Assembly (NCBI GenBank): GCA_965202585.1 | Contig: OZ241831.1 | Span: 57,412,001 to 57,476,000, forward strand | Reading direction: 5' to 3' | Source: Thalia democratica | Taxonomy: Eukaryota | DNA length: 64,000 bases | Shown: positions 1,607-63,762 of the stretch, piece by piece | Position numbering within the stretch: position 1 is the stretch's first letter | How the letters are laid out: the number at the start of each line of letters is the position of its first letter | Translations under genes and position numbers: made by a program | Notes under the pieces: generated by a model | Told to the model about the DNA's origin: nothing | Seen by the model: only the letters and a program-made list of their open reading frames with translations | The model's database searches: none

Positions 1607-1943
1607 CCTAAAAATGATGTATATTTTTTTAAATAGTATATTAGGTACTATAAAACTAATAAATACAATTTAACTTTTGAATTCTAACTTTGAGCTTGTG
1701 TGTAACACTTATCAAGTATTTAACAATCACACACTTCACTAATTTTTGTTTTATTCGATAACATGTTAACTTCCCGTTTTACAGCTTTTGTTTGAAAAGT
1801 TTAAGTGAAAAAAGCTTGTTAGTACTTTTTGAGTATAAAATAAAATATTATTTAAGAAAATTGTATTTGCTTGTTTTTGTTGTTTCAGCTGCAATTTAAC
1901 TTTTCAATGATTTAATGACGTTTTTATCAAAAATACCTGTTAG

Positions 1944-3110
1944 AAGTTCACACCGTTCGACCAAGATGTCCTCCCTCAAAATTGGAAGTGTCATAGAGGA
2001 ATGTTCTGGATCACAATCAAGAAAACAAATGAAACGAAAATGGTGGAAAGATTCATCTACTTTCCACCGCCAAATGATCGAAGAATACCCACCGGGAAAA
2101 TTAAAAACAAATATTTCAGGTATTTTGTTTTTGTGTTTGTTTTTCACTTGTCATATTTGCTTGCCTAAACGTTATTACTTCTCTATCTTGGGGAATTAAA
2201 GAAAATTGAATACATTGAAAAATTAACTTTTTTTTTTAAGTAAGCTACTAAATAAATGCATTTAATGGAAACCATGTTTTTTTTTGTATTATGTCGTTTT
2301 TTAAGAGAGGAGTTTTTTGTAACTTATAGATTAAATCAGGTTAAATATAATCGTGAACTTACAAACAACAGTTAAGCTTAAACAAATCACCACCATAACA
2401 ATTATTATGTTAGCAACCATGAACTAGTTTTTAATCTAATCTACTCTTAAACAATATATTTTCTATATGGCCATGTTAAATGTTCGTACCTTAAAAATTA
2501 ACAAAAAGTCTAAAAACTTGATAGTTTTTATTTTATTTTATTCAAAAAATTTTTTCAAGCATCATTGTCTTATTAACTGTTTTTAAACAAAAGCTAAAAG
2601 AAATAAGTTTATATTTGTTTATAAAAATTGTTAAACTTTTAGTTAGTTTAACTTTTACCCTTGAAACTCTTTTTTTATGACTGATAGTTAAATGTTACGA
2701 ACTTAAAATGTAAAACTATTTTTGTAGGCAAGTGTAATTTACTTTTATTTTAGCAAAATTTTTTGAATTAAAGTTATTTTAGTCAGAAAAGTAATTTAGA
2801 AAAAATACAAAAATAATTTATTTTTACCAAATCTAACGTACATGGTGTATAAAACACCTGCTTTGGTTAAAAATATCTTACAATTTTTTAAAATTTTTAT
2901 TCACTTAGAACTTCATAAAACTGATTAGTTTAATTAACTATAAAAACACTATTTTAAAACAATGGTCCCCAGATTTATTGCAAGCGTGAGTTTATGGGGA
3001 TCTATAAACTAACTAATTTTATTTTATACACTCTACACATATCAGGTCGATCACAAACATCGGGAAAATCTACCCTGAATTTAAAGGAATCCTTGAAGGT
3101 CTTGGCAGGG
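1944..3110 (+). other. MBD/TAM-like domain of G1, split over two exons (LPQNW...FIYFPP...GKIKNKYFRSITNIGKIY)
   Basis: Motif order LPxGW - beta strands - (Y)YxP - GK..FRS - helix matches the MBD family pattern, with insertions. Recognised by eye, no HMM run. Confidence 0.55.
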
Positions 3111-4799
3111 ATCTGAAACCTAGAAGATGGAAACCTAAGAAAGCAAAGCAGAGCAGCAATCGGGTTAATGAGGGCGCTTCAACTTCTGGTCTACAAAATG
3201 GACGGAAACGGAAGTCCAGTGGTAAGAATTTATTTATTAATTTGTGAATGAGTTTAAGTAATTTGGCAGCAAATTACTTAATTTAAAGCCAAATAGTTCC
3301 TTAAATTGTTATTGTTTAACTGCTACTATCAAAATAGATTAATAAGACATTTAAGAAGAACATGGAGTATATTTTATAATTATAAATTATAAGCTGTTGA
3401 ATAAAAAGTTAATTTTTCGTTATAAGCGATTTTTTACTCAAAAGAATGTTATTTTTCGAAATTTTAAAAATCACTTTATTTTATAACTACATAAAATACT
3501 TAACATATGATTACTAAAACTTAATAGCAACTTATACCATTCGTCAAGGTAAGAAACGGAAGCTGAAGATCAAAACCACTGTCCCAAAGAAGAGGAAGGT
3601 AAAAACGCAATCAGATCCAAACAAATTTGCCGCAACTGTTCCTCATCCAGGTGTAGATGTGAATAACAAAGAAGTGGAAACCTGCAGGAAACTGAATATC
3701 AAGCTCAGAAGAAGCGAAGCAGAAGTCAATGCGGAAAATCAACAGGTTGTTAACGCTAAACCTGAAAAAGATGCAGAAGATGTAAATGAAGTTAATCAGG
3801 TTGAAGAAGAAGTTGTGAGTGAGACTCAACATAGTCAACAAGAAGACAACGTAGAGCAATCCGGAGATGATGCAAGGCTGACAAGTGATGAACAAATGGC
3901 AGATGTTTCACATGATGAAGATCAAGTGGTGAGTTTCTTAAATAATTTGCTAACTATTAAATAAGGTATTGTTAAGGTTAACTCATACTAGTTTTGATAG
4001 GAAGTTTTATGTTATTTTAAAAATTGTAAGTATTTTTTTCAATATTAAACTAAAATTAAATTACATATTTTCGTTGCAGCAGACAAGAGTCAGTGGTCAG
4101 GAAGCAGGGGAGCATCAGTCAGATGCCGAAGATGTTCCATCTGACCAGCTTGCAGTTCGGGAGAGCCAGCAAGGCGACAACGGAGACCAGCAGAGTGGAG
4201 AAGGTGGAAGGATGGCAACAGAAACGCAAGTTGCAGAGGTTTCAAATGATGGTGGTGAAGTCAATAACGCTGATACTGTAAACCAAGTAGTGGGTTTTTT
4301 TGATAATTTTTTAACTAAAAATATAAATATATTAATCAAGAATAAATTGTTTTATAAACTTTAAAACTTGTTAAATCTGAATGCAATCGTTTTTTTTTTT
4401 AATTGAAGTTAATTTTTTATTAAGCAGACCAGAGGTAATAGTCTGATGCAACAGCATGATGCTACCAACCACAATGTTGATCGGAGAATTGCTCAAACTG
4501 ATCAAGTTGACGGTGGTGTGAGAAACGGTGAGGATTACAAAAAGTACGCGCAATTGACCGTGGAACAGCTGAAGATGAACCACTACTACATGCTTGACCT
4601 CTACCTTAAGCTCATGAATGCTATAGGTAAGCAAGGTTCATTAGATAACTATAAGAAGAATTTGTCCGCCATCATTTTCATCGTGGCCGAGCATTCCCAT
4701 AAAATTTTTTTGAGGGATTTCTCGCCACGTTTCGATGAAAGGAGGCGGGAGTTCTTTACTCAGTTTTACCAAATGCCCCATTTTTTTCACCCCGCTTAG
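1944..4799 (+). CDS. Paralog G1 (5' exons outside window): MBD-like domain, NLS, acidic linker, conserved C-terminal domain
   Basis: Exons 1944-2119, 3046-3221, 3549-3928, 4080-4289, 4428-4799 are all AG/GT bounded, with phases 0-2-1-0-0 joining into one open frame that ends ...FFHPA-TAG. Exon structure is collinear with G3; in the first two exons 10 of 14 differing codons are synonymous. Confidence 0.85.
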
Positions 4800-6300
4800 A
4801 GTTTTTAAAGTTTTTATAGCGAGATAGTTGTAGTTTTAGTATTTTAAAACTTCTATAAAAAGCACTCTTGCCAATTAGGTAATTCTACATCAGTTTGAGA
4901 TAAATATTTCAAATTGTTTTGAATTTAGTTACTATTAGACAAATGTTTTTGCCATTTAGGTAATTTTAGATTATTTACACTTTTAGCTTAGTTACTTTTA
5001 AAAGTTTTTTCAAAACTATGGATTTATGTGTTAGAACATTTATTTTGGCAACAATTATAATGAAATTTTTTTAAAGCACAAATTGGTAATTTTAATAAGT
5101 TTTGTTTATGATTTTAATCGATTATTATGTTATTAAAGTCTTCATTGAGTTGTGAAGTTTTTGATTGTTTATCTTAACTAATATTAATAACAGAATAATT
5201 ATTGAATTTTATTGTTTATTATAAATTATACTAGAAGTTATTGAAACCTGTTTTACCTAAGGTCTACTAGTTAAACTTCTCAATCAAACAAAATTTTTAA
5301 TTTTGTATACACTTAGGAAAAATAAAAAGTAAATGAAATAATTTTAACCAATTTAAGTAGATGCTTAAATTAAATTTGCAAAGTATTTGCACAAAAGCAA
5401 TTAAAATTTTAGTTGTAAAATTAAATTACTATGAACAGTTTTTGTTGGTAATTTGATTGAATATAATTTCAGAATGCATGTATAGATAGACGATAAGAAA
5501 ATTAAGATAAATACTTAACATTTATAATTTCTAGAATCTAGATATAAGATCACAAAAGTCAAGTTAAGCTAATTTACTTTTTTTACTAAGGGTTACTTTA
5601 AAGTTAAATTAATTTTATAACTCATACAGATTATGTAATAATACCAAAAATTTTTAATTTTTAAAAATAGTTTATAATGGCTAAAACGCTTATTTATATT
5701 TAGCTAACATTTTTAATTTACTTATTAATAAGTCTTTTCAGATATATCGGGTTTATATTAAACCGTTATTACAAAGTTACATTATAATACAAGCTAAAAA
5801 GTTAAAGTCAGCATAAACTGCAGTAGTTCAAAACTTGTCTTTAAAATTTCAAGTAAATATATATCTGTGTACTTCATTTTTATATATAGAAATAATAAGC
5901 TTATAAATTTTTAAACTCAAGTAGACAAGATTTTGCTAGAATTCTAATAGTTCTCTCTGTAAGTTTTTTTAAATATATTTTCAATTTTGATAAGTTACAA
6001 CTTTTTTTTACATCATGTAATAATATTTCTAAGTTTATAATTAAAAACATGCTGAAATAATGGTTTGAAAATTTCCACTTCAAAATAATAATAGGTTAGA
6101 ATAGGTTTGATCAAATACTCTAGTCTATATAAGCAAGTCTTTGTGACGGTTCTGTTTTCTGTAAAAACCTTTGAGGACTAAAAGTTAACAAATTTATAAA
6201 ACGTACTAACAATCTTTTTTAAAGTTAACTTGCTTTTGTAATAACCATTTACTAAGTTTTACCACAAATAGTAGTATTAGTACAAATTACAAATATAATT

Positions 6301-7548: not shown

Positions 7549-7899
7549 TTTTCTCCTCTTACCTTCGTACTTTAAAAATTTATTCTTGGTTATCCGAAAA
7601 AGAAACATTAATTTTTATTCCTTAACACTTGTAAGAATGCTTAAAACTCCCTATATAGAAAAATGAACGAAAAAACGACCGCCGACTTTTACCTCTTTAG
7701 TTTAAAAAGTATTACTTTACTTAATTCTATAAATTCTATAAACCGGTTTAAAATACACAAAAATGATAAAAGTATGGTACAGTTTTTCAAAATAACAGAA
7801 AAATGTAGAAAGTTCAAAAAATCTCCTCGCCGCCGGAACTCGCTCCGCCCCTGCACGTCTCCACGTCGTCTGACCGGTCCACGCCGATCCGTCTCCTCG

Positions 7900-8273
7900 C
7901 CTCACCCAACGGTCTCTTGGCGCCACGGAATCCGTCTCCTTGCCTCACCCAGCGGTCTCTTGGCGCTACGGAACCGTCTCCTTGCCTCACCCAGCGGTCT
8001 CTTGGCGCCACGGAATCCGTCTCCTTGCCTCAACCAGCGGTCTCTTGGCACTACGGAACCGTCTTTTTGCCTCACCCAGCGGTCTCTTGGCGCTACGGAA
8101 CCGTCTCCTTGCCTCACCCAGCGGTCTCTTGGCGCCACGGAATCCGTCTCCTTGCCTCAACCAGCGGTCTCTTGGCGCTACGGAACCGTCTCCTTGCCTC
8201 ACCCAGCGGTCTCTTGGCGCCACGGAATCCGTCTCCTTGCCTCACCCAACGGTCTCTTGGCGCTACGGAATCC
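7900..8273. repeat. GC/CpG-rich minisatellite, ~8.8 units of 42/43 bp, inside the LTR element
   Basis: Unit cctcacccagcggtctcttggcgctacggaaccgtctccttg (42) or ...gcgccacggaatccg... (43). Unit starts 7900, 7943, 7985, 8028, 8070, 8112, 8155, 8197, 8240. Confidence 0.97.
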
Positions 8274-21350: not shown

Positions 21351-23231
21351 TATCAACGTATTCCAGAAAAAAACCATGAAATGAGTGTTTAACTTATTTA
21401 GTTTTCCTAAGGCATTAGCATTTAAAAAAATAACAGTTCAGTGTAATTTTGTCTTCTTAGCGTAACAGTTTTTTTATGTTGTACTTTTCTAAATTTTATT
21501 AACCAGCGATGCGTTTTATAAAATAAGTTCAACGTCAAATTATTTTTTCTTATAATTTTAGCACATAGAGAAAAGTTGTCAATAGATAAGATAGACATTT
21601 AGAGTAAAATTGTATTAAAATTAATTACTGTAAGTGCACTTCAATAATATTTCATAGAATGCAGCTGTTCTGCCAAGTTCGTCATCTTCTGGTTTGCAAA
21701 CGAATGGATCGGGTCAGGATACAGAGGTTGCCCAGATTCAGGATTCTTTGCTTCCAAAAGCTGTTCCTACAGGACCAAATGCCTTACCAGAAGTACGAAA
21801 TCAGCCGACAGAAGCCACACGGGTTGTGGATGCAGCTGATGAACCATTGGCAACTGCTGTGGCCGGATCTGCTAAAAGGAAGAAGTCGCTTTCACAGAAG
21901 TACATTAAGCAACCACCAAATCCACTGTCGACATCTGAAAAGCCATCTAATGTTGAAACCGATTTGCCTTTAACTACTGGGGTTGGGCATACAACATCAG
22001 TAGCGTCAGGTAAAAGCAAAAAAGCAAACAGAGTCACTGAGTTAAACGAAGCTGAACCGGCGGCTTCTGAAAGTACGTTTTCTTCTAGTGTCGCATCGGG
22101 GCTCGGTAAGAGTGTGCAAGTAAAGCAATCCGAAGTTCGATCGTCTGAAAATCAGCATACATCTGAACATATGTTAGATCAGCCAACTAAGAAGAACGCA
22201 ATAGGAGGTGCTGAAGAAAATTTGACTGCAATCGGCAATGAAGATAAGCAGGTAGCTGTGTTACCAATAGATGAGTCTGAACAGCCAGTGAACGAAGATC
22301 ATGAATTTGTTCAGGATGTTAGTGTAACGGATCATGTTCAGGAATCACCTGATGTTCGCAGTAATGAGGCGCAACAACATACACTGGTAGCAGGACATCA
22401 GAACGAGGTGTTGTCAGAAGACATCGATGATAAGTGGAGCCAACAAGAAGACACCAGAGAGCAGCAGAACGGCAACTCACAAGTTGCAGCTGCTAGTCAG
22501 CCTGATGATGGAGTCATTACTGATAATCAAGAGGTGAGTATCTTTTCTATAGTAGTTATCTAACATTTAATAAGGTGGGGTCTCTATTTTTTTCTGATTA
22601 GTTCTAATAATAAAAAACTATAATCGTTAACATGTAAATAAAGTGTCCTTTAGTTTTACTCAGATTAGTTTTTATAAAAAATCTCGAGGCGGAATTGTCT
22701 TACAATTGTCAAAATAAGTGGTTGGTGTATTTTTTTGATAATTTGCTAACTAACAAACTAAGTATATTGATTAAGAATAAATTGTTTTACGACTTTTAAA
22801 ATTTGTTATATCTGAATGCAATCGGTTTTTTTTTTATTGAAGTTAATGTTTTATCACAGAACAGAGGTAATAGTCAGATGAAACACAATGATGCTACCAA
22901 CCGTGATGCTGATCGGAGAGTTGCTCGAACTGATCAAGTTGACGGAAGTGTGAGAAATGGTGAGGATTACAAAAAGTACGTGAGGCTTACAGTGCAGCAG
23001 CTGAAATTCAACCAGCACTACTCCTTGGATCTGTATATGAAGTTGATGTCCTCAATTGGTAAACCGGCCTCATTGGAAAATTATAGGAAAAACTTGTCCG
23101 CCGTACATTTCATTGTGGCCGAGCATTCCCACAAAGATTTTTTGAGGGATTTCTCGCCACGTTTCGATGAAAAGAGGCGAGAGTTCTTTACTCAGTTTTA
23201 TACTTACCCTAATTTATTTCATCCCGCTTAG
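16885..23231 (+). CDS. Paralog G2, 509 aa: basic N-terminus, long S/E/Q/D-rich disordered exon, conserved C-terminal domain; no MBD-like module
   Basis: Exons 16885-16968 (MPKTTP...DQK), 18225-18311, 19693-19803, 21658-22533, 22860-23231; all phase-0 GT-AG introns and one open frame of 1530 nt. Exons 1, 2, 4 and 5 are homologous to G3 exons. Confidence 0.85.
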
Positions 23232-47300: not shown

Positions 47301-50300
47301 TTTAAGCTTGTGTTACGGTAATCACAAAAAGGGTAAACAAATAAAATGTTTACTAAAACATTTCTAAATCAGAAACTGTACGTATGTCAAAAGATTATCT
47401 TGTTGTTTATTATAGTTTTAATGTTTTTTATAATTAATTTACAAGCCTGTTTCTAGATTTTAAGAATTAGGTAAGAAATAGCTTTAAAAACAAATAAATA
47501 TGTTGAGAAATTTTCTAATTAGACATGAATTGCAAATTCATAATGACGTCAATATCATTGAAACGTAATGAGAGCTTTTTAAAAACAAAAACTCTACCCT
47601 ATTTAACATTAGTTTTCAAATTTAAATGCTAGAGTAATCAAACAAAATAAAGTTGTGCCTTATTTTTGAACTAAAAGGTTTAATTTTGTTTTAATATGCT
47701 TAGCTCTATATTATTATTATTACTAAATTATTCATACTTGTTTTATAAAATTATTTTACGCGCTGCAAACTTTTGCTTATTTTAAAACACAATATCAAAA
47801 CTTGGGCTATAATAAATTTTGCTTTTAAGCAAAATATTTTCGTTTGACAATTATTTTTTATTTTGTACAGTTCTTTAAATTTGTAATTAATTATAAACTG
47901 ACCATTTAATTTCAACTATTTCACTACGACATTACTACAGAGACGTTTCAATATTTCTTTTAACTCGATATCTAAGTAAAAATCAATGTTGCTTTGTGAT
48001 TTTATTTTGTAAGTAACAGGATTGAATTTAAAATACTTTATCGTAGTGTTATTTTTACTGTCAAAGTTTAATACTGTAGTTGCTTAAGTAATGTCTACAA
48101 GTTTAAATAGACAAAATGACATTATCAGGTTTTAGATAACTATAAGATGAAAATTTTAAAGTTTCGAAAATTTTTTTTTTAATTAAGCTTTATCCAAAGA
48201 CAAATAAAAGAAATAAAACAAAAAAGATTATTTTTCTAATAATAAGCTTATCAATAATTGGTTATATTTTTCTTGTAATAAGTGTTATATCACATCAATC
48301 TGTATTTACACAAAGTTTTAAATCTTTTTTCTAAAATAATTTAATGTCATTTAAACTATAATTATACAATTATCAAACAACTTACTTTAAAAGTTTAATG
48401 CTAAACTTGTTTCGGTTTTATGAACTATTTTGAGAATGCTTATATAAATACCTTCATAAATTTTAGATTGCATGGTTATTTTTAAAGAATATATACTTTT
48501 TTGTAGAACTAGTTTTAGACGAATTAGATTATATATTAAAAACAGATTCCAAGCTTGCCTTCTGTGCCGTCTGTAATTGCTTGAATTATTTTTACTTTAT
48601 GAAACTAGTGATTGTGTCAACGATAAACTAAAAATCTCACCACCTCTTAAATCAAAGATAGTTCTTACGTTTTTTTAAGAGCTTCATAGTTTAAAAAATA
48701 AAATTCATGCTTACCTTCTAAGTAAAAGGATGCGTGAAGTAGAACATTAAAGCAGTTAAAAATATTGAAAGAAAAAACTGACAATTTACAACATTTTACT
48801 TTTTTTAGAATTCGATGTTATAAAAAAAGTTCTTTCTGTAAGGAGATTTTGCTTATAATTTTGTTCAAAAGTTTAGCGTATTTTCTGAACAACTCAGCAA
48901 ATTTCTAAATAAAATATCATAAGCATTTTTTACTTATGATAAGTATGTGCAAAAAATTTTTGACTGCGTTTTTAAAAACTTTCAAAGATGAATTGTTTTA
49001 AGTATAATTTTACATATATAAACAATAGAACCATTGTCATAGATACCAGTGGTATTTATTTTTTAAACTGTTTTTCTAAGTGCATTAAAACGTGAGTTTT
49101 TTTAATAAGGAGTGTCAAATTCAAAGTTATCAAAATAAAAAGTTTCTGTTGATGTTACAGTATATAAACATAAACGATTACGTGAGATAAAAAAATTTTA
49201 AATGTATACTTTATTTAAATCATTTTAAAGCTTAAAAATAGGCTGCCACATCTCTTAAAAAGGAATTTTTAACTATGGTTTTAAATAAGAACAAAAATTA
49301 TTATTCATTGAAAAAGTTATTGTACATATGAAAATAATATTAATGTTTTACTTTAATTATTTATAATCGTTTTAAAATCAAGTTACTAATTTTAATAGAT
49401 CTGTTCAATCATTATCATATTACAATAAAAAAAAATATTTTAGTAAAAATTTTGTTTTTAGCATGATTTAAGAACATTTGGTTTTATAAACTTGTACATG
49501 GAGTATTTAAAACATTTATTAAATTTATTTATAACTTTAAACGTAATCCATCAAAGATCATCTCTTTCCGACTGTTAGTTCATTTTTTTAGTATGAAAAT
49601 TAAGGTACGTAGCAAATGAACTTAAAAAGTTATATAGGTGTTTAACAGTGGTTATACAAAATAACAAATTAATAAATACAGACACTTTTCCATAAACAAG
49701 GATCTAGTAATCAAATACTGTTCTCTAAAAAAGTGAAAGCTTTCTCACATTCTGGCTACTAAACGAAAAAGTGAAAAAAAAAGGAAAAGTTTATAATTAA
49801 ATATTTTGTAACAGAATTGCTAAAACAGCTTTAACTTAATAATTTAAACAAGAAATGTGATAAAACCTCAAGCCTGAGATATTTAAGAATTCTTAAATTT
49901 CAAAAAGAAATTACTAGTAAAAAAAAAACTTGAAACATCTGAAATTTTTAACACTTTTTTCATGTCAAGTTGTAATGTCTAAATACAAAAGATCAATTGT
50001 ATGAGGTAATTGTTTCAAGTATTTAGGGTTTTTTTTTGTAAAACACATTTAAGGCAGTAAACCAATAATTCTTTTAATATTTTATACAATTTAAGACATT
50101 TTGAATTTAAAAATGGACAAAATTTTGTACCTGAAAAACCTGGAATAAATTCAGTAACCCTTAAAAACTGAAAACAATGTTTATTGTTTTAACCTTATCA
50201 ACAATGAGCTTCACCGCACGACCAACAAAAAAAACAGTATCCGAGTCAACCTTCGACCCGTTTCGTCCTTTTTAGGACTCATCAGGAAGGCATAGTCGCG

Positions 50301-53300
50301 AGAAACCGCTGTTGTGATTTTAACAAAGCCTTTAAGATGTTATAACTAGTGATGTACCGGACCCACAATTTCGGGTTCGGCCGGAACAGGATCCGGGCTT
50401 TTTTTTCAAGTTAGAATCCGGCCGGAACCGGACCCGGACTTTTTTTTCAAAATAGAATCCGGCCGGAACCGGATCCGGACTTTTTTTTTCAAATTAGAAT
50501 CCGGCCGGATCTGGACATCAGACAAAAATGGCAATATCCGGCCGGACCCGGACCCGGATAGTGAGTCCGGTACATCACTAGTATAAACTAGCCTGAGTCA
50601 GAATGAGGTTTTTAAAAACTGAAAAAAAAGAACTTTAATCTAATAATAAGTAGAACAGCTAGCCACAAGGTTTACAAATTTAGGTTTTATTTACAATTAA
50701 AAATCTGAAATCAAGTTCTTGAACCAAATACACTAGAAAATTACCAAATATTAAAAACTGGATCAGCTGAAACTCATTCAAAATTTAAAAGAAAACTAGC
50801 CTGAGCTTTTATAAAAAACTAAACTAGCCTGAGGCAGTCCAAGATTTTCTAACATTCCCAAAATTTTTCAAACTAGCAGGGTTGCCACTGTTTAAGTCAT
50901 TAAAACTAGCTAGAGTGAGTATAAACAAGCCTGAGTCAGAATGAGGTTTTTAAAAACTGAAAAAATTACTCTAATCTAATAATCAGTAGAACAGCTAGCA
51001 AAGGTTGACAATTTGGTAGTAAAGTTGTGGAATATGGTACACTTAACTTATTAGTACTACCCATCATAATTAAATCCTACCTTATTTAATTAATATCTAA
51101 CAAATACTAAATTCTAACTGAGACTACTTTCTATAATCAGACACGACAGTTTTGAGTGATGAATCTTTTATTTAAAACACAACAAGAAATACTAGCATAT
51201 ACAAAATTATTAATTACTTTGGCAAAACTTTAAAAACTGGAAGCTATCTAAATCTATATCAAAAGACTTAATACAATAAACTAAAAGTTAAATAAAACTT
51301 TTAGTAAACAAGAAACTGTTAACTTTTTAATAAACTATTAAACTATAAACCTGGCTTAAATAATAAAACAATTAAACACCAGTTGAAATATTCACTTATC
51401 ACAAAATTTCACAAATAATTTCAAGATATTTTGTTGCTTCAAGCTGCACACCAAACTAACTAACTGCTTACATATAAACTGCCTGTCATATTCTGATGTT
51501 TTGTTGCATCAGTATTTAGTTTGAAACATTTCGTCATATGATTTTCATTGGCTCGTACATTCAACCGTATTAACTCTAAATATTCTCTGAGCTCAACTTT
51601 AAACAATAAATAATGCAAGTATTAATTCTAAAGTTTTCAATTTTACAACAAATGTAAAGAGTTGCATTTCTGAAATGTTTATTTCATAGTTTTAATGTAA
51701 ACAAATATAAATTAGTCACCTGTACAAAATGAGCCAATCACGGTAGGTTTTTAATTTTAAGTGACGAAAATGACTCTTATTAATTTACACAGGGTTTGTT
51801 TTTGAAAAATACTTTTCAGTATGCTCTTTTCTACTAACTAGATCCGGGTCCGGCCGAATCTCTGTTAGGATCCGGCCGGACCCGGATCCGGACTTTTTTT
51901 TTCAAATTAAAATCCGGCCGGAACCGAATCCGGACTTTTTTTTCAAATTAGAGTCCGGCCGGATCCGGATATCAGACAAAAATGGCAATATCCGGCCGAA
52001 CCCGGATAGTGAGTCCGGTACATCACTAGTTATAACCTAAATCGTTTTTATAGTTAAAAGTTTTGTTTTTCGAAATTGTTTCTTATAAGTAACTCTAAAA
52101 ATTCTCACAGAATTCTGCCGATCAAATGAGCTCGTCAGCAGCTCAAAAGAGTGAATTCGAGCAGAACGAAGGTGTAGCAGTTCCATACCGAAATGCAAGG
52201 AAGTCGGGAAGTGCCAAAAGAAAGGGAACTCCCATCAAATTTGTTCAGCAACTTGCAATTGAACCGCCGACAATTGAAAAAGCGACTGTTGTAAATTCAA
52301 ATAAGAAGGCAATAGATGGCGGCTCGGTGACTCGCGATGAAAAGTTGGCTCAGTCAGATCAGCCGTCTACTCGTGTTAAAAGTTCAAGAAGAAAGAAAGG
52401 CAGTGAAGTAGGATCTGCAGGACCCGCTACAGAGGAGAATGAATCTTCTTTGAAGGTTGGTTTAAATTTTAGTTATATTCTAAAGCTGAACCAAATAATT
52501 AATTTTGAAGTTAATTCTAAGAGTTAAAAGGTATTAAACTGTATGCAATAGAAATTTTATTTAATTATTATTATTTCGAAAGCTGTTAAGAGTTTAAACA
52601 GCGCATATTTATTATTTTTAGAAACAATAAAATGATAAAACTAATTGATGTAAAGTTAAAAAAGCATTTTTAATTAAAATTGAGAGTTTTACTAACCTAA
52701 AAATGTTGTACATTTTTTTAAATAGTACATTAGATACTATAAAACTAATAAATACAGTTTAACTTTTGAACTCTTACTTTGAGCTTGTGTGTAACACTCA
52801 TCAAGTATTTAACAATCACACACTTCACTAATTTTTGTTTTATTCGATAACATGTTAACTTCCCGTTTTACAGCTTTTGTTTGAGAAGTTTAAGTGAAAA
52901 AAGCTTGTTAGTACTTTTTGAGTATAAAATAAATATTATTTAAGAAAATTGTATTTGCTTGCTTTTGTTGTTTCAGCTGCAATTTAACTTTTCAATGATT
53001 TAATGACGTTTTTATTAAAAATACCTGTTAGAAGTTCACACCGTTCGACCAAGATGTCCTCCCTCAAGGTTGGAAGTGTCACAGAGGAATGTTCTGGATC
53101 ACAATCAAGAAAACAAATGAAACGAAACTGGTGGAAAGATTTATCTACTTTCCACCACCAAATGATCGAAGAATACCCACCGGGAAAATAAAAAACAAGT
53201 ATTTCAGGTAGATTGTCTTTGTGATTATTTTTTCACTTGTCATATTTGCTTGCCTAAACGTTATTACTTCTCTATCTTAGGGAACTAAACTAAACTTAGT

Positions 53301-56125
53301 ATTTGAAAAATTAAGATTTTTTTTTGAAGCTACTAAATAAATGCATTTAATGGAAACCATGTTTTTTTTTTGTATTATGTCGTTTTTTAGGACAGGTTTT
53401 TTTTTTGTAACTTATAGATTAAATCAGGTTAAATATAATCGTGAACTTACAAACAACAGTTAAGCTTAAACAAAACACCACCATAACAATTATTATGTTA
53501 GCAACCATGTTGTTTAGTTTATAATCTTTTCTGCTAGACAAAATTTTAAAAGTTTGAGTTTAATTAACTACATATTAAAGTAAAAGTTATAAAAAACTAT
53601 ATAAAGTAGGTTTAAAATAATATATTTTCTATATGGCTTGGATAAATGTTCTTACCTTAAAAATTAACAAATATTCTAAAACTTAATAGTTTTTTTTTTA
53701 ACTTTTTTCAAGCTATATTGTCTTAATAGCTGTTTTTAAACAAAAATAAAAGAAATAAGTTTATGTTTATTTATAAATATCGTTAAATTTTTGATTACTT
53801 TAACTTTTCCCCTTGAAAGTTTTTTTTTTATGATTGATAGTTAAATGTTACGAACTTAAAATGTAAAACTATTTTGTAGGCAAGTGTAATATTTTTTGAG
53901 CAAAATTATTTGAATTAAAATTATTTTAGTCAGAAAAAATGATATATAAAAAATACAAAAATAATTTATTTTTACTAAATCTAACGTACACGGTGTATAA
54001 AACACCTGCTTTGGTTATAAATATCTTACAATTTTTTGAAATTTTTATTCACTTAGAACTTCATGAGACTGATTAGTTTAATTAACAGTGATAAGACTAT
54101 TTTAAAACTAAAATCCCCATATTTATTGCAAGCGTGAGTTTATGGGGAACTATAAACTAACTCATTTAATTATATACACTCTACGCATATCAGGTCGATC
54201 ACAAACATCGGAAAAATCTACCCTGAGTATAAAGAAATCCTTGAAGGTCTTGGCAGGGATCTGAAACCTAGAAGATGGAAACCTAAGAAAGCAAAGCAGA
54301 GCAGCAATCGGGTTAATGAGGGCGCTTCAACTTCTGGACTACAAAATGGACGGAAACGGAAGTCTAGCGGTAAGAATTCATTTATTAATTTGTGAATGAG
54401 TTTGAGTAGTTTGGCAGCAAATTACTTTGTTTGAAACCAATTAATTCCTTAGATTGTTAGTGTTTAAATGCTACTATCAAACTAGATTACCATGGCATTT
54501 AAGAAGAACATGGAGTATATTTTCTATTTATAAATTACAAGATGTTGAAAAAAAAGTTAAATTTTCGTTATTAGTGTTTTTACTTAAAGGAATGTTATTT
54601 TTCGAAATTTCATAGATCACTTATTTTTATAATGTATAAATTTTATAACTACATAAAATACTTAGCATATGATTACTAAAACTTTATAACAACTTATGTT
54701 ATTCGTCAAGGTAAGAAACGGAAGCTGAAGACCAAAACCACTGTGCCAAAGAAGAGGAAGGTAAAAACACGTTCAGATCGTGGAGATGAAGAAGTCGTGA
54801 GTGAAACCCAAGAAGACAACGGAGAGAACTCCGGGGAAGATGCGAGGCTGACAAAAGATGAACAAATGGAAAATGTTTCACATGATAAAGATCAAGTGGT
54901 GAGTTTCTTAAACAATTTGCTAAGCATTGAATAAGGTATTGTTAAGGTTAACTCATACTAGTTTTGATAGTAAATTTTATGTTATTTTAAGGTTTGTAAG
55001 TATTTTTTTCAAAGAAAACTGTTTTTCAATATTAAACTAAAATTGAAATACAAAATTATGCTGCAGCAGACAAGAGGCAGTGGTCAGGATGTAGCAAGGC
55101 ATCAACCAGATGATGACGAAAATGTTCAATCTGACCAGCTTGCAGTTCAACAAGAAGACAACGGAGATAACTCCGGAAAAGATGTCAGGCTGACAAGCAA
55201 TGAACAAATGGCAGAAGTTTCACACGATGAAGATCAAGTGGTGAGTTTCTTAAATAATTTGCTATGCATAAAATATATAAGGTATTACTTGGGTTAATAG
55301 TTTTGGTAGGAAGTTTTAATTGTATTAAGAATCTAAAATATTTTTTTTTAATAAAAGCTGTTTTTCAAAATTAAACTAAAATTAAATTACATATTTTCGT
55401 TGCAGCAGACAAGTGGCAGTGGTCAGGAAGCAGGGGAGCATCAGTCAGATGCCGAAGACGTTCAATCTGACCATCTTGCAGTTCGGGAGAGCCAGCAAGG
55501 CGACAACGGAGACCAGCAAAGTGGAAGGATGGCAACAGAAGCACAAGTTGCAGAGGTTTCAAATGATGATGGTGGTGAAGTCAATAACGCTGATGCTGTA
55601 AACCAAGTAGTGGGTTTTATTCTAACTTAAAAAAAAGCATATCTTTGGGTAACTTATTCTTGACTGTTTTACAACAACCTTTAAAACTTGTTGTTTATTT
55701 TCTTTAATTTAAATTCGATTTGTTTTTTAATTATTGTTTATTTTTTATCGCAGACCAGAGGTAATAGTCAGATGCAACAACATGATGCTACCAACCGCTA
55801 TGTTGATCGGAGAATTGCTCAAACTGATCAAGTTGACGGTGGTGAGAGAAACGGTGAGGATTACAGAAAGTACGTGAATCTGACCGTGGAACAACTGAAG
55901 CTGAATCAACACTACATGCTGGATCTTTACCTAACTCTCATGAACGCTATAGGTAAACCAACCTCATTAAAAAATTTTAAGAAAAATTTGTCCGCCATAC
56001 ATTTCATTGTGGCCGAGCATTCCCAAAAAATTTTTTTGAGGGATTTCTCGCCACGTTTCGATGAAAAGAGGCGAGAGTTCTTTACTCAGTTTTACCAAAT
56101 GCCTAATTTTTTTCACCCCGCTTAG
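44346..56125 (+). CDS. Paralog G3, 590 aa: basic N-terminus, MBD-like domain, PKKRKV NLS, acidic repeats, conserved C-terminal domain
   Basis: Exons 44346-44411, 46426-46497, 52111-52455, 53032-53207, 54194-54369, 54711-54898, 55067-55240, 55406-55609, 55754-56125; all AG/GT bounded; 1773 nt in one open frame from ATG to TAG. Confidence 0.85.
50250..50290 (-). ncRNA. Minimal type I hammerhead ribozyme with intact catalytic core
   Basis: Minus strand CCTTC CTGATGA GTCCT AAAA AGGAC GAAA CGG GTC GAAGG: stem I CCTTC/GAAGG, canonical CUGAUGA and GAAA, 5-bp stem II, GUC cleavage triplet (cut after 50255 on the minus strand). Confidence 0.88.
50347..52028. mobile_element. Non-autonomous hAT-type element, 1682 bp, with an extra internal right TIR, in G3 intron 2
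   Basis: 16-bp TIR TAGTGATGTACCGGAC / GTCCGGTACATCACTA; perfect 8-bp TSD GTTATAAC (50339-50346, 52029-52036); ~41-bp subterminal repeats ccggccggaaccggatccggacttttt; additional right TIR ending at 50580. Confidence 0.9.
53032..54260 (+). other. MBD/TAM-like domain of G3 (LPQGW...FIYFPP...GKIKNKYFRSITNIGKIY)
   Basis: Same motif pattern as in G1, with the canonical LPxGW retained. Confidence 0.55.
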
Positions 56126-59100
56126 GTTTTTAAAGTTTTTATAGCGAGATAGTTATTGTTTTAGTATTTTAAAACTTCTATAAAAAGCACTCTTGCCAAT
56201 TAGGTAATTCTACATCAGATTGAGATAAATATATTAAATTGTTTTGAATTTAGTTACTATTAGACAAATATTCTTGCCATTTAGGTAATTTTAGATTGTT
56301 TTACTTATTTTAGCTTAGTTACTTTTTAAAAAATATGGATTTATATGTTAGATTATTTATTGTGGCAATGATTATAATGAAATTTTTTTGAAGCACGAAT
56401 TGGTAATTTTGATAAATTTTGTGTATAATTTTATTCGATTACTATGTTATTAAAGTGTTCATTAAAGTTGTGAAGTTTTTGATTGTTTATCTTAACTGAT
56501 ATTAATAACAGCATAGTTATTGAATTTTATTGTTTATTTAGATTATATTAGAATTCATTGAAACCTGTTTTTACCTAAGGTCAACTAGTTAAACATGTGA
56601 ATTAAACAAACTGTTTAATTTTGTATACACTTAGAAAAAAAATGAAATAATTTTAACCAATACAAGTAGATGCTTAAATTAAATTTGCAAAGTATTTGCA
56701 CAAAAGCAATTAAAATTTTAGTTGTAAAATTAAATTAATTTGAACAGTTTTTGTTGGTAATTTGATTGAATATAATTTCAGAATGCATGTATAGATATAC
56801 CATAAGAAAATTAAGATAAATACTTAACATCACTAACTTCTAGATATAAGATCATAAAAGTCAAGTTGAGCTGATTAACTGTTTTTACTAAGGGTTACTT
56901 TAAAATTAAATTAATTCTATAACTAATACAGATTATGTTTTAAAGCCAAAAAATTATGTTTTCTTAATTTTTATATAAAAATAGTTTATAATGGCTAAAA
57001 TGCTTATTTATATTTAGCTTACATTTTTTATTTACTTATTAATAAGTGCTTTCAGATATGTCGGGGTATATTTAACCGTTATTACAAAGTTACATTATAA
57101 TACGAGCTAAAAAGTTAAAGTCAGCATAAACTACAGTAGTTTAAAACTTGTCTTTGAAATTTCAAGTAAATATATATCTGTCTAATTTATTTTTATATAT
57201 AGAAATAATAAGTTTATAAAGTTTTAAACTCAAGTAGACAAGTTATTGCTTAAATTCTAATAGTTTTCTCTGTAATTTCATTAAATATATTTTAAATTTT
57301 GATAAATAAGAACTTTTTTTACATTATTTAATGATATTTTTAACTTTATTATTTAAAACATGCTGAAATTATGGTTTGAAAAATTTAGCACCGCTTCAAA
57401 ATAATAATAGTTTAGAATAGGTTTAGAACAAATATTCTAATCTGTATAAGCAAGTCTTTGCGTCGGTTTTGTTTTCTGGAAAAACCTTTGCGGACTAAAA
57501 GTTAACAAATTTATAAAACGTACTAACAATCTTTTTTAAAGTTAACTTGCTTTTGTAATAACCATATAAGTTTTACCACAAATAGTAGTATTAGTACAAA
57601 TTACAAATATAATTTACTACCAGGTTTAAATATGAAAAAAGTCTGACCTTTTCAATTATAATAGGATAGTAAATATAGTACTATTTTGTTACACTTAAAA
57701 AGGTCGGATTATTTCCCATTGAAACCTGGTAGTGAATAAAATATTTTATTTGTATTAGTAATATTATTTAAACTTACTCTTTAAAGGACAGTAAATTGAG
57801 CAATATTTTTAGTTAGACAATGACCTATATAAGTTTTAGTATATAATGAACACTATAATTATTGTATGAATAAAAGTTTTAATCAGATCAAATCGATCAA
57901 CCGACTACAAGCTTTCGGTAAACTGAGACCAGGGTTTTGTTTTTTTTAACGTTCGTGAATCAGCCGCAATCGAAAAAGCTTGCGTGTCTAAAATCAGTTT
58001 ATCATGTTTAAGCATGAAGTAACCGCTTGATGGTATTGGTCAGTTGCTCAGTATTAAAAAAAAAAACTCTTTAACTTAAGACATTAATGGGTTCATATAA
58101 TAAATAGTATAAATAAGGTCTAAAAAGTAATTGAGGAGATATTTGAAATTTATACTAGTTTTTCTCGGTTTTGTAACTAGTGGTTAAGTGTAAGTCGTAA
58201 GTTAAAAAATAAAAATATGTAGAAGGTAGTTTCCTACACAAAAAAGCTACTATTAATTGTTTATAAGTTGATTAATCTGCATTAATTGTTTTTAGCTATA
58301 AAGTACTTTACCAGTCAAATTCGGTCTGCAGTTAGCCGACCCTTGCTTTAATTGCTAAAAGAGAGTAAAGTAAAATATATGTTACGAATTTCTATGAAGT
58401 TTGAAACAAAAAAGTTAAATAAAATGATAAAATTTACTTTAAAAGTGAACTTTGGACTAGATTTACTTGAAAATAATATTACTTTATTAAATTTTATTAT
58501 AATGACTTATACTTAGTAGTTTTAAATAAAAGTATTGAAAATATATATATAAAGAACATTAAACATTTAGTTGTATTATTAACTTTTTGAAATTGATATA
58601 GTAAGTAAACAAGCATTTATTTTTAACTGACTAAAATGGTGTAAAAAAAAAGATAATTTAAGGACTCTGTTTTAAAAGAGCTTCTCTATTTCGAAATCTT
58701 ATAAATCTAACGTTTGTAAACCCAATACTTTGTTACAAGGTTGCCAAAAATAATTTTAAGTACTGAACAGTGAAATAAATTTCCTTTTTTTCTAGAGTGT
58801 CAACGTCAAGTAATTTTTGGCCATACACTCAAAGCAACAATAGTTTAATTTATTAAGCTAGATGTTGCTACTAAGCATATTTTAGTACTCTTATATTAAC
58901 CTGCATAGACACAAAAATAAACTCTTGGCAAAATCGAACTACTAAATCTACCTCTGAAGACATAGTAAAAACTGTAATCAAAATAACCATTAACTTTTAA
59001 ACAAAAGAAAAACTTTTCCTTAGTTTTGTTTACCAATGTCACTACATTATTAAATGTTTGTCTTTGACAAGTTAGCTCCAATGGTCTACGATAGTTAGTA

Positions 59101-59405
59101 TAATAAAAAAAAATTGAGAAATAAGCAAGTGTAAAATAGTACTTAGTCAGCTATTAAGCTGATTTCTAAGAAAAATAAATACATTCTAGTTATAATCTGT
59201 TTTTTTTTTTACAGCTTCGACTTTATCAAATTTTTATTCAAGATAATAACTTTAGCAAGTTTTTAAACAACAAACAGAGCATAAAAAAATACATTTTTTT
59301 AAATGTATTTATTACGACAATCATCAACAAAGTTGAAATGTTTTGCGCTATCAACAACAAATAATTAACTTCACCACACGGCCAACATCTACAGCATCCG
59401 AGACA

Positions 59406-59448
59406 ACCTATGACCGGTTTCGTCCTCATTAGGACTTATAAGGCAGAC
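59406..59448 (-). ncRNA. Degenerate hammerhead ribozyme in a ~314-bp tandem monomer
   Basis: Minus strand GTCTGC CTTATAA GTCCT AATG AGGAC GAAA CCG GTC ATAGGT. The marker cttcaccac recurs at 59369 and 59683 (period 314); a second partial core lies at 59721-59740. Confidence 0.7.
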
Positions 59449-59881
59449 ATAGCGGCGAGAAACCGCTGTTGAGATCTAAAAAAGCGGGCTATAGTATAAA
59501 GTACTGAAGCGAGTTACTTAAGTTGAAAAAACTGACACAGCTTTATCATTCTCAACGTCTAAGACATTGTCAGCTTGTTGTAAATTACAGTCTGTGCTCG
59601 TTTGATCAGTTTTAACCAGTAGTTATTACTGCTATCATCAACCAAGTTTAGTTGTTTCGCGCCATCAACAATAATTAATTAACTTCACCACAAGACCAAC
59701 AACAACAGCATTTGAGTCAACCAACAACCAGTTTCGTCCTTTTTTTGTTTTTGATTACAAATACAGTACTTTGATTATTATTTTTTTATTTTTACCATCA
59801 AACGGTTTCTTCAGTACTTTATACTTTAGCCCGCTTGGTTGGATCTCAACAGCCACTCAGGTTGATCTTAAACGCGACTAT

Positions 59882-59924
59882 GCCTGCCTAATGAGTCCTT
59901 ATGAGGACGAAACCGGTCATAGGC
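59882..59924 (+). ncRNA. Hammerhead ribozyme motif with G5A core mutation (paralog of 11603-11645)
   Basis: GCCTGC CTAATGA GTCCT TATG AGGAC GAAA CCG GTC ATAGGC. Confidence 0.75.
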
Positions 59925-62148
59925 TGTCTCGGATGCTGTTGTTGTTGGTCGTGGGGTGTAGTTTGTTTTATTTTTTCCTACAAATTAAACGATTTAATGT
60001 CTTCAAACTACTCACTTATTAGTTATTTTCAAAGTATGTAGTATAAACCTAAATTCCACATAGCTTATATTAAGGTCAACAATTAAAACAATAAATTAAA
60101 AACTAGTTAAGAAGTAAAGCAAGGTTAGAAAAACTACGGCTTGCCAAGCAAAAAATCTTTACTAAGACGAATAGTTCAGCTAGAAATAATTTGTACAAAA
60201 AAAAGCTGTTTCTTTTCAGTATTTATTGTCTTTAATAATGACTTTAAATAGTACCTAAGTGGTGTACGACTCAAAAGCCAAAACGTTTTTTCGTTCACCA
60301 GGTATTAGGACCAAGCATTTTGAACCAATTTTTTTTCTTTCAATAAACAATAGTAATGTTTTTAAAAGTTTCAAAGTGTTTTTGATATTTTAAAAGTATC
60401 TTGTAAAGTTTTTGTTGTATTAAATACCTAGTGCAAAGTTTATTTCAAATAAAAAAATCTTTGAAATTTATTAAAAAAAAAATTGTTTAAAATATACCCA
60501 TAAAAAATTGGTTTCAAAATTTCGGATCAATTTTTGTACTTTATAATTTTATATTAGTAGAATACTAGTTGTATAATGTATGAAATTGCTACAATTTGAT
60601 AATTACATTCAAGTGTTATAGTTATGTAAAGATAAGTTTTGATTCTAAATCATATTAATTAAGTTACAAATAAATGAAACAAAAACTGAAACATTTATAT
60701 TTCTTATAACAAGACTATTTAGTCTTAATAACATATAATCATGTTAAACAAACAATCAAGTTTTAAAATTACAGTACAGTATCAATATCAGTTTAATTCA
60801 AAAAACTTACCATACTAAAACTACTATTCATAAAAAACGTTTTTTTATCATACAAATTATTTTTTTATTATTAATAGTGCTTCTAAACTTATAAAAACTA
60901 TTTAGTTTTCCATTATTTAAAACATGTTCGTATTCAATAGTAATATGTTTTACCACTAAAAGTTATTGAACAGGAATATTTTTAATTTACAGTTATCTTT
61001 GCTATCATTGCAGAACTTCTGTCTTTAAAAGTTTATATTTATTAAGTAACAAAATATTTTGACTGGTAAAACCAAATTATTTGTCGAGAACTAGATCATT
61101 TATGTTTAAAATAAATGTAAAAGCAAGTGAATGATAAAAGTAATTGAGTTGAATTAGAAATCAAACCGTAATTTTAATTCTAATTAAAGCTATGCTGTAA
61201 TTATTCTAAAGGTTTAGATTAATATTTAATCCTAAAATAGTGGTTTTAAATTGTTAAAAATTTATTATTAGTATAATACAAACGTTGAAAAATGTTTTAT
61301 CCCAATAATTGAGTATTTTTTCAAGGAGAACAGTAATATTTATTTGAAAAACATTGTTTGCTAATTCAGTTTCCTACAATAGAAACTTTTGCTTCTTGAT
61401 TTAAAACGTTTTGGACCACGTCTTGTTTGTTGATTTAAAACTAATAAGCCTGCGGTCGGCAAGTTACAGTAAACATTTGGCCACTTGACAAAGCTTTTGG
61501 TCTACGACTTTTCAGCTAAAGAACAACTATTACAAGAGAAGCTTTTCTATAAAGAAAAGTTTAAAACGTGGTCCGTTTTCTCAGCTTACAAGTAATCTGT
61601 GTTTACTTCATCACATGTTTGGCCGTTTTTGAAGTTTTTCAATGGAGTTAGTTTTTGATTTTTTTTCACTCATATATGATGAAAATAAGGTTAACTAATA
61701 GCACAGAAGTACATTAACTACATTTAAATTTCTATTTACCTACTACACCCGAAGTTTTTAATCTTTACCTCTATCCCCAAAACCCACCTAACCAAAACAT
61801 TGAACAAAAAAATAAAAAATAAACTAATAATTCAACTATGCAGCCTAGTATATGTTTACTTCATCACATGTTTGGCCGTCTTTGAAGTTTTTCAATTGAG
61901 TTAAATTTTAATCTTTACCCCTATCCCTAAAACTCACCTAACCAAAACATCTATTAAACAAATCAAAAATAAACTAGTAGTTCAAAACAACAGAAGTCAA
62001 ATTTTAGCTAAATAAAAACGCCTAGATTTTGAAGCTGACAGTTTGAATTGTTCATAAAATGTTTTCACAATAGCCTTTTAGCAGAAAGTTTAAAAAAAAT
62101 CGCCTATTCTTTAGGATTGAAAGCAAACCTCAGAATAAATAGTGTAGG

Positions 62149-62907: not shown

Positions 62908-63762
62908 TAGTGATGTACCGGACCCGAACTTTTTTTAAACTACGATCCGGCCGGATCCGGATATAAGACAAAAACGGCAATATCCGGCCGGATCTGGACC
63001 CGGATAGTGAGTCATATTATGTCAATTATGTTATATTATATATATAGATCATAAAAATTGATCCAGCACTAAAAAAAAGTAAAATCTAGAGAAATCTAGG
63101 GAAATTCAGGATTTTTTCAATTTTATTAAGGGAAATTTAGGGTATTTTTTTGGATAATTGCAAAAATCTAGGGATATGGAAACCCTGTAAAGTGGGTATA
63201 AACTAGCTTGAGTCAGAATGAGGTTTTTAAAAACTAAAAAATTACTTTAATCTAATAATCAGTAGAATAGCTAGCCGTAGAGTTGACAATTTAGTAGTAA
63301 AGTTTTTAATTTTAAACATAGGTATAGAGTTGCATTTCTAAATGTTTGTTTCAAAGTTTAAATATAAACAAATGTCAATTAGTCAAGTGTACAAAATGAG
63401 CCAATCATGGTAGGTGTTTAATTTTAACTGACAAAAATTAATCTTTTTAATTTACAAAGGGTTTGTTTTGGAAAAATACTTTTCTGTATGCTCTTTCTTA
63501 CTAACTAGATCCGAATCGGCCGGATCTCTGTTAGGATAGTAAATGGTCTGATGAATAAATAAGGAAATATTTGAAACCTACACCGGATCCGAACAATTTT
63601 TTAAAATAAAGATCCGGCCGGACCTGGACTTTTTTTTTCAAATTAGAATCCGGCCGGAACCAGATCCGGATTTTTTTTTCAAATTAGGATCCGGCCGGAA
63701 CCGGATATTTTTTTCATATCAAAATCCGGCCGGATCCGGATAGTGACTCCGGTACATCATTA
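62908..63762. mobile_element. Second member of the TAGTGATGTACCGGAC hAT-type family, 855 bp
   Basis: Same TIRs and subterminal repeats; perfect 8-bp TSD GTTATTAT (62900-62907, 63763-63770); internal sequence shared with 50581-51845; empty site in the paralog at ~14470. Confidence 0.9.

Follow-up and report, generated by a model that had tools for sequence, protein, structure and literature searches.

Canonical methyl-CpG-binding domains (MBDs) read methylated CpG with two arginine fingers, which in MBD2 are R166 and R188 (PMC8600091). The TAM domain of BAZ2A and BAZ2B has lysine at both finger positions, and two strands and a helix added at its C terminus complete its five-stranded sheet. TAM binds the backbone of double-stranded DNA and double-stranded RNA without reading methylation, and it shows that base-specific reading can be lost in MBD-like domains (PMC8600091). 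Clr2 is also MBD-like (PMC8667873). We analyzed a 64,000-nucleotide stretch of the Thalia democratica genome (contig OZ241831.1, positions 57,412,001 to 57,476,000, forward strand; hereafter the window), which is AT-rich eukaryotic DNA with 21-34% GC. An initial annotation of this DNA, made from the sequence alone, proposed that two exons encode a divergent MBD/TAM-like domain in a tandemly expanding family of nuclear proteins. These exons belong to a predicted gene, here called G3, and we refer to the region that they encode as the module. We give an even chance to the explanation that the module is a real, selectively constrained, basic and beta-rich orphan module of a lineage-specific nuclear protein, and not demonstrable kin of the MBDs.

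Gene model and reading frame

G3 has seven exons on the + strand (52126-56125; 1620 nucleotides) and encodes an uninterrupted protein of 539 amino acids. Two partial paralogs in the window, G1 and G2, are described further below. The features of G3 are as follows.

52126-52455, + strand: exon 1, with the ATG; a 110-amino-acid basic N-terminal region, probably disordered; GT donor at 52456, phase 0, in frame with exon 2
53032-53207, + strand: exon 2, coding for the first half of the module (LPQGW ... YFPPP ... PTGK ... KYF-R); three beta-strands are predicted; bordered by an AG acceptor and a GT donor
53208-54193, + strand: intron 2, phase 2, splitting the Arg codon of F-R-S; GT..AG in G3 and in G1; 90% identical to the G1 intron
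54194-54369, + strand: exon 3, (R)SITNIGKIYPEYKEILEGLG, which probably forms a helix, followed by a tail rich in Lys, Arg, and Ser that ends in RKRKSS
54711-54898, + strand: exon 4, with the nuclear localization signal (NLS) cluster KKRKLK (54713-54730) and PKKRKV (54746-54763); the first of the acidic repeats follows
55067-55240, + strand: exon 5, an acidic repeat, phase 0-0; it arose by exon duplication within the gene, is missing from G1, and has 75% nucleotide identity to the exon 4/exon 6 region
55406-55609, + strand: exon 6, an acidic repeat, phase 0-0
55754-56125, + strand: exon 7, the family-defining C-terminal helical domain and the stop codon

The module had been read in a frame absent from the open reading frame (ORF) track and joined across a phase-2 intron. 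Both module exons are open in that frame and translate exactly as the initial annotation had written them, the intron between them has GT..AG borders, and the AG|G codon, split after its second base, yields Arg. Four further GT-AG introns follow the module, and the frame runs to the stop codon at 56125. Upstream of 52126 there was no coding ORF on the + strand, and additional G3 exons 5' of this position were rejected on that ground. By all sequence-level tests available, G3 is a real coding gene, with its splicing predicted.

From its N to its C terminus, the protein consists of a basic region (residues 1-110; no Pfam match in the exon 1 region), the ~80-residue module (residues 111-190; predicted sheet from exon 2, probable short helix from exon 3), the Lys/Arg cluster that carries the NLS motifs (residues 191-255), an acidic region (residues 256-416), and the helical C-terminal domain within the 123 amino acids of the C-terminal exon (residues 417-539). 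The Lys/Arg cluster has 25 Lys or Arg among its 65 residues and a net charge of +19, and RKRKSS, KKRKLK, and PKKRKV all lie inside it. The acidic region is made of three exon-sized repeats with a net charge of -32. The NLS motif of the SV40 T antigen is PKKKRKV. The SV40-like NLS that had been noticed in the exon after the module is present there as KKRKLK and PKKRKV; both follow RKRKSS in G3 and G1 and fit the K-K/R-x-K/R core and basic cluster of a classical monopartite (SV40-type) NLS.

Selection on the module exons

The two paralogs are located at lower coordinates on the same strand.

1944-4799, + strand: G1 paralog, exons 1944-2119, 3046-3221, 3549-3928, 4080-4289, and 4428-4799; in-frame partial ORF of 437 amino acids with GT-AG introns
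21658-23231, + strand: G2 paralog, exons 21658-22533 and 22860-23231; in-frame partial ORF of 415 amino acids; an acidic/disordered exon and the C-terminal domain

G1 carries the module and the NLS as in G3. Compared with G3, it has a longer exon 4 and lacks one of the acidic repeats, and its exon 1 lies outside the window, beyond a fragment of a long interspersed nuclear element (LINE). Nucleotide identity between G1 and G3 is 84-97%, introns included. G2 has no module or NLS exons, and tblastn at E<=50 placed the module at G1 and G3 only. The same-strand cluster of G1, G2, and G3, together with the internal exon duplication, bears out the tandem expansion of the family that had been proposed. 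The module block corresponds to exons 2-4 and is in phase 0 at both ends, so that its gain or loss leaves the frame intact.

Across the module exons, G1 and G3 differ at 15 of 352 nucleotides. These differences affect 14 codons, 10 of them synonymously and four non-synonymously, and the two peptides are thus separated by four substitutions. Our recount reproduced the 10 synonymous codons out of 14 on which the initial annotation had based its claim of purifying selection, and the Nei-Gojobori ratio of non-synonymous (dN) to synonymous (dS) divergence was 0.12 (synonymous excess, binomial P=1.9e-4). The dS of the module exons, 0.15, is near the divergence of the introns (88.6-96.7% identical), and the module exons are therefore constrained and not merely young. 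When the three frames were compared, the proposed one was alone in being open in both copies with mostly synonymous differences. The frame of the ORF track over the module had one synonymous and seven non-synonymous differences and a stop in G3; in the two frames other than the proposed one, differences were almost all non-synonymous and stops were present. Judged by this substitution pattern, the module exon pair is under purifying selection.

Sequence comparison of the module with MBDs

Pfam, PDB, ESM-Atlas, and AlphaFold were queried with the exon pieces apart, and the spliced domain was tested with our own hidden Markov models (HMMs) and by Smith-Waterman alignment. Neither exon piece matched an MBD in Pfam, in PDB sequences, or among 1.84 billion protein representatives. 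The HMMER check against PF01429 that the initial annotation had suggested came out negative: in hmmscan, each exon piece (58-59 amino acids, G3 and G1) matched no Pfam family at E<=10, PF01429 included, and the spliced domain scored weakly against an MBD HMM (see below). A phmmer search of the PDB gave nothing for exon 2; for exon 3, designed helical coiled coils alone matched (residues 9-40), which fits the helix-prone segment. Searched against the 1.84 billion representatives, the exon-2 peptide retrieved two translated tandem-repeat proteins (junk) alone and no real relative. As a control, a 35-amino-acid piece of MBD2 from the same part of the domain retrieved MBD1, MBD3, MBD4, MeCP2, and plant MBD5/6 in the PDB with E-values of 1e-5 to 1e-13; the search method therefore detects true MBDs across kingdoms. 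A scan of JGI metagenomes gave 223 pattern matches, of which 0 were confirmed, and retrieval of related contigs with a wrong-frame 62-amino-acid ORF over exon 2 yielded no candidate.

The MBD HMM was built from five MBD cores (MBD1-4 and MeCP2), each residue of which was first verified in PDB chains 6c1a, 2mb7, 1d9n, 6c1y, and 4lg7. The spliced 90-amino-acid domain was scored with filters off, and P-values were obtained from 20,000 shuffles. G3 scored 2.7 bits (P=0.016, uncorrected for the many windows screened), and G1 scored -0.7 bits (P=0.27). The alignment placed LPQGWK on HMM positions 1-6 and KYFRS on positions 31-35, and nothing else. The score of G1 is lower because the Gly of GW is Asn there: G3 has LPQGW and G1 has LPQNW, a two-nucleotide change (GGT to AAT), and all five reference MBDs keep GW. 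Smith-Waterman comparison with the five MBDs gave z-scores of 1.7, 2.3, 0.5, 1.4, and 0.2 (3,000-5,000 shuffles), with LPQGW(K) as the best local alignment.

In the HMM register, the Arg of FRS falls at the position of MBD2 R188, the second arginine finger. Nothing aligns to MBD2 R166; the residue seven places after the Trp is Phe, and by eye, Glu and Phe occupy the places of Asp and Tyr. The proposal of the initial annotation that the FRS arginine is kept agrees with the local HMM alignment. In an alternative register, NIGKIY-PE lies on SGKKF-RS; this register is free of gaps from GK to LG but puts Pro at the R188 position. Compared with MBD2, the spacer from GW to YF is four residues longer and that from YF to FRS is 11 residues longer. 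A YF..[TI]GKI motif occurs twice in the module (53149-53205 and 54195-54221), as YFPPPNDRRIPTGKI and as YFRSITNIGKI, and the alignment to MBDs is therefore ambiguous. The repeated motif may reflect a small internal duplication.

The variant MECP2 c.378-2A>G places an intron before c.378, in codon 126 and phase 2 (PMC9570315). This MECP2 intron lies seven aligned residues before R133, and the intron of the module lies in the FRS Arg codon itself; both are in phase 2.

At the level of sequence, two short motifs are what makes the module MBD-like; the likeness passed none of the statistical tests applied to it, and kinship cannot be demonstrated. We regard the label "divergent MBD/TAM" as a lead and not as a finding.

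Language-model and structural comparisons

Among the named ESM-Atlas neighbors, those closest to the exon-2 peptide were all MBD or MBD-like Clr2 clusters. The top score was 0.83, with 136-162 shared features, which is below the reliability level and is reached by shuffled sequences one third of the time, and PF01429 is present in only some 25% of the proteins in the top clusters. No WW cluster was present among the family sets listed for the 100 neighbors. The exon-3 piece had neighbors without a family name. The ESM search and the initial annotation probably react to the same two motifs, and they are therefore not independent.

Structures were predicted for exon 2 alone and for the C-terminal domain. 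For exon 2 (two-sequence alignment), AlphaFold2 gave three antiparallel strands at residues 14-17, 20-29, and 32-40, with a predicted local distance difference test score (pLDDT) of 51 and a predicted template modeling score (pTM) of 0.26. With this model, Foldseek found nothing significant in the PDB (best E 0.66). The PDB list had MBD3 chains at ranks 11, 18, and 24 (root mean square deviation 7.6), and the Tn916 integrase DNA-binding domain and AP2 domains were also in it. In the Swiss-Prot set of the AlphaFold database, the list was mostly AP2/ERF, all at E>0.6. The ESM-Atlas shape search returned a Tn916 Integrase_DNA cluster with TM scores of 0.56/0.53 over 46 residues, and the VIA search of 48,161 chains ranked generic beta-meanders first. 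An MBD consists of an antiparallel sheet of three to four strands that packs on a single helix, followed by a hairpin loop; the exon-2 model covers the strands, and the helix-prone segment is encoded by exon 3. MBDs belong to a beta3-alpha class of DNA-binding folds together with AP2/ERF and the N-terminal domain of Tn916 integrase. The weak fold matches of the predicted model are compatible with this class; any short beta-meander would be expected to act alike. The proposed MBD/TAM fold had mixed results: Pfam, HMM, and Smith-Waterman comparisons fail to support it, and the MBD-like ESM neighbors, below the reliability level, and the low-confidence three-stranded sheet are in its favor.

C-terminal domain and range of the family

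The C-terminal domain is shared by G1, G2, and G3 (pairwise dN/dS 0.27-0.35). Together with three ORFs from ENA metagenome contigs, at 62-78% identity, the paralogs have 42 invariant columns. One of these three short metagenome-assembly contigs, from marine metagenome PRJEB4352, has 29% GC and is ~70% identical to the window over the exon and its flanks. The lineage appears to be marine. AlphaFold2 predicted an all-helical domain with a core pLDDT of about 80 and a pTM of 0.53. No match above noise was found in Pfam, ESM-Atlas, Foldseek (PDB and AlphaFold database clusters), Atlas shapes, or VIA-align, as the description of this domain as unrecognized had implied. It is the conserved core that defines the family, ~85 residues long, helical, and with no known relative. 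The overall arrangement likewise matches none of the MBD1-4, MeCP2, BAZ2, or SETDB architectures, as had been stated.

Origin and possible role of the module

Several observations tell against an orphan origin of the module. PF01429 sets make up 42+4+1+1+9+1 of the 100 ESM-Atlas clusters nearest to the exon-2 peptide, and Clr2_transil makes up 8; the two motifs occur in the right order, with the FRS Arg on the second arginine finger in the MBD HMM; and the shapes nearest to the low-confidence exon-2 model include the Tn916 integrase DNA-binding domain and AP2/ERF, which are of the same beta3-alpha class as the MBD. We consider it possible, though doubtful, that the module is a true, very divergent MBD/TAM homolog with an inserted or longer GW-YF hairpin, a longer loop before FRS, and methylation-independent binding of DNA or RNA like that of the BAZ2A TAM. 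Such kinship would account for LPQGWK and KYFRS in the right order on the MBD HMM, the MBD or MBD-like ESM neighbors, the predicted three-stranded antiparallel sheet followed by a helix-prone segment, and the MBD3 chains at ranks 11, 18, and 24 in the PDB, and TAM provides the precedent for an MBD-like domain that has lost base-specific reading (PMC8600091). It is opposed by the lack of any Pfam or PDB match, by HMM scores at P=0.016 (uncorrected for windows screened) for G3 and P=0.27 for G1, by pairwise z-scores of 0.2-2.3, and by an ESM score below the reliability level. G1 has Asn for the invariant Gly of GW, the spacers exceed the canonical ones by four and 11 residues, no residues can be aligned with the first arginine finger, the Asp, or the Tyr, and the intron lies in the FRS Arg codon, whereas that of MECP2 lies seven aligned residues earlier. 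With the same probability, the module could be seen as a rebuilt MBD, with a hairpin insertion, a possible YF..GKI duplication, and loss of the first arginine finger, which together with a new helical C-terminal domain would form a so far undescribed, tandemly expanding family of methylation-independent chromatin or RNA readers.

LPxGW is also the start motif of WW domains, and in the AlphaFold2 model three short antiparallel strands come right after it; the N-terminal part of the module might then be a WW-like three-stranded meander that binds peptides and not nucleic acid. Smith-Waterman alignment with the PIN1 WW gave z=3.4 (P=0.01), although the two motifs were out of register. An HMM made from PIN1 and three ITCH repeats scored G3 at 1.0 bits (P=0.075) and G1 at -0.3 bits, no PF00397 match was found with the exon pieces in Pfam, and WW was absent from the ESM family sets listed and from the fold lists. 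WW domains have two Trp at a distance of 20-22 residues and a Pro three residues beyond the second; in the module, Leu occupies the place of the second Trp, and no Pro follows. We rejected a WW identity on the missing Pfam match, the 1.0-bit score, and the missing Trp and Pro, and consider a WW-like meander very unlikely; a better match to WW, which the initial annotation had named as evidence against an MBD, was not obtained, since WW did no better than MBD (1.0 versus 2.7 bits). Another branch of three-stranded-sheet DNA-binding domains, AP2/ERF-like or similar to the Tn916 integrase N-terminal domain and perhaps derived from a mobile element, is an improbable source, if somewhat less so than WW. 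The Swiss-Prot matches from Foldseek are mostly AP2/ERF proteins, the Tn916 Integrase_DNA cluster superposes at TM 0.56/0.53 over 46 residues, and the window is rich in retroelements. These matches are, however, far below significance and come from a model with a pLDDT of 51; VIA ranks generic beta-meanders ahead of them, there is no PF00847 or PF02920 match, and neither profile nor superposition placed the module in this branch. Least probable of all, in our judgment, is that the module exons are non-functional, as a duplicated pseudo-exon pair or a mis-joined gene model. In its favor, no protein in the public collections searched contains the peptide, and the three public runs in which the locus is found consist of genomic-type contigs that cross exon-intron borders and carry no junction information; the synonymous excess (P=1.9e-4), the canonical splice sites kept in both copies, and an uninterrupted ORF of 539 amino acids over seven exons argue against it.

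If the module is an orphan module of a nuclear protein, as we favor, the NLS cluster would most likely direct nuclear import. In the nucleus, the module and its tail, both basic, would attach to nucleic acid or chromatin through charge and would not read methyl-CpG in the canonical manner, and contacts with proteins would be made by the acidic repeats and the helical C-terminal domain. The family expands as genes duplicate locally, as exons duplicate, and as the module block is gained or lost. The module of G3 is a well-supported coding exon pair hidden by ORF tracks, in a fast-evolving orphan family of nuclear proteins. It is useful for annotating this genome and would not surprise a chromatin specialist. 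If it were derived from an MBD, the small set of MBD-like domains that have given up methyl-CpG reading (TAM, Clr2, and MBD5/6) would gain a lineage-specific branch, and the module would show gain or loss of a domain at the exon level between neighboring paralogs.

Divergence of the paralogs and other elements in the window

The homologous regions of G1 (1607-4975) and G3 (52696-56300) show mosaic divergence, with 96.7% identity just 5' of exon 2, ~90% in the module intron, and 84% in the 3' half. Between G1 and G3, the C-terminal exon has a dS of 0.29, compared with 0.15 for the module exons. This mosaic suggests gene conversion or a composite history. Homology of the G1 and G3 first introns stops at 1607. 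LINE-like reverse-transcriptase fragments (PF00078, E 4.7e-7) occupy 363-1168 on the - strand, at the end of homology, and their insertion seems to have displaced or separated exon 1 of G1.

A Hammerhead_1 ribozyme (RF00163) lies at 50249-50291 on the - strand (37.1 bits; gathering threshold 34), 1.8 kb 5' of the G3 ATG. It is the sole Rfam match at gathering level in the window, and none was found at 59310-59965. As there is no coding exon 5' of 52126, a hammerhead in a G3 intron would require an untranslated 5' exon. Tandem repeats at 50378-50509 (41 bp), which adjoin the hammerhead, and at 63597-63741 (76 bp) have a common core, CGGCCGGAACCGGATCCGGA, and are probably parts of one repeat family. 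A GC-rich minisatellite at 7887-8273, with a unit of ~42/85 bp and 93-96% matches, contains long overlapping spurious ORFs in several frames and on both strands.

Comparison with known systems

Like the canonical MBDs (MBD1-4 and MeCP2; PF01429), the module has a strand that begins with LPxGW(K) and a helix-prone segment directly preceded by (K)xFRS, is basic, adjoins a nuclear-targeting sequence, and contains a phase-2 intron. Unlike them, its similarity is limited to these two motifs, with spacers four and 11 residues longer, and its partner domains are different; no positions can be assigned to the first arginine finger, the Asp, or the Tyr, G1 has Asn for the Gly of GW, and the intron is shifted by seven aligned residues.

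The TAM domains of BAZ2A and BAZ2B bind the backbone of double-stranded DNA and RNA independently of methylation, which is the behavior that the initial annotation had proposed for the module. In contrast to TAM, the helix-prone segment of the module is directly followed by the Lys/Arg/Ser-rich tail, and a TAM-type extension is therefore not possible; the module also stands without an AT-hook, PHD, or bromodomain context. Clr2 of fission yeast and the plant MBD-like clusters are its nearest ESM neighbors and, like the module, are poorly recognized by PF01429, but no alignment or E-value ties them to it, and 0.83 is below a reliable family call.

With WW domains (PF00397), the module shares LPxGW followed by a short three-stranded antiparallel meander; it differs from them in having no second Trp and Pro, longer strands, a helix that follows, and no Pfam or HMM support. 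The Tn916 integrase N-terminal domain and AP2/ERF are alike in being the nearest shapes to the low-confidence three-strand model.

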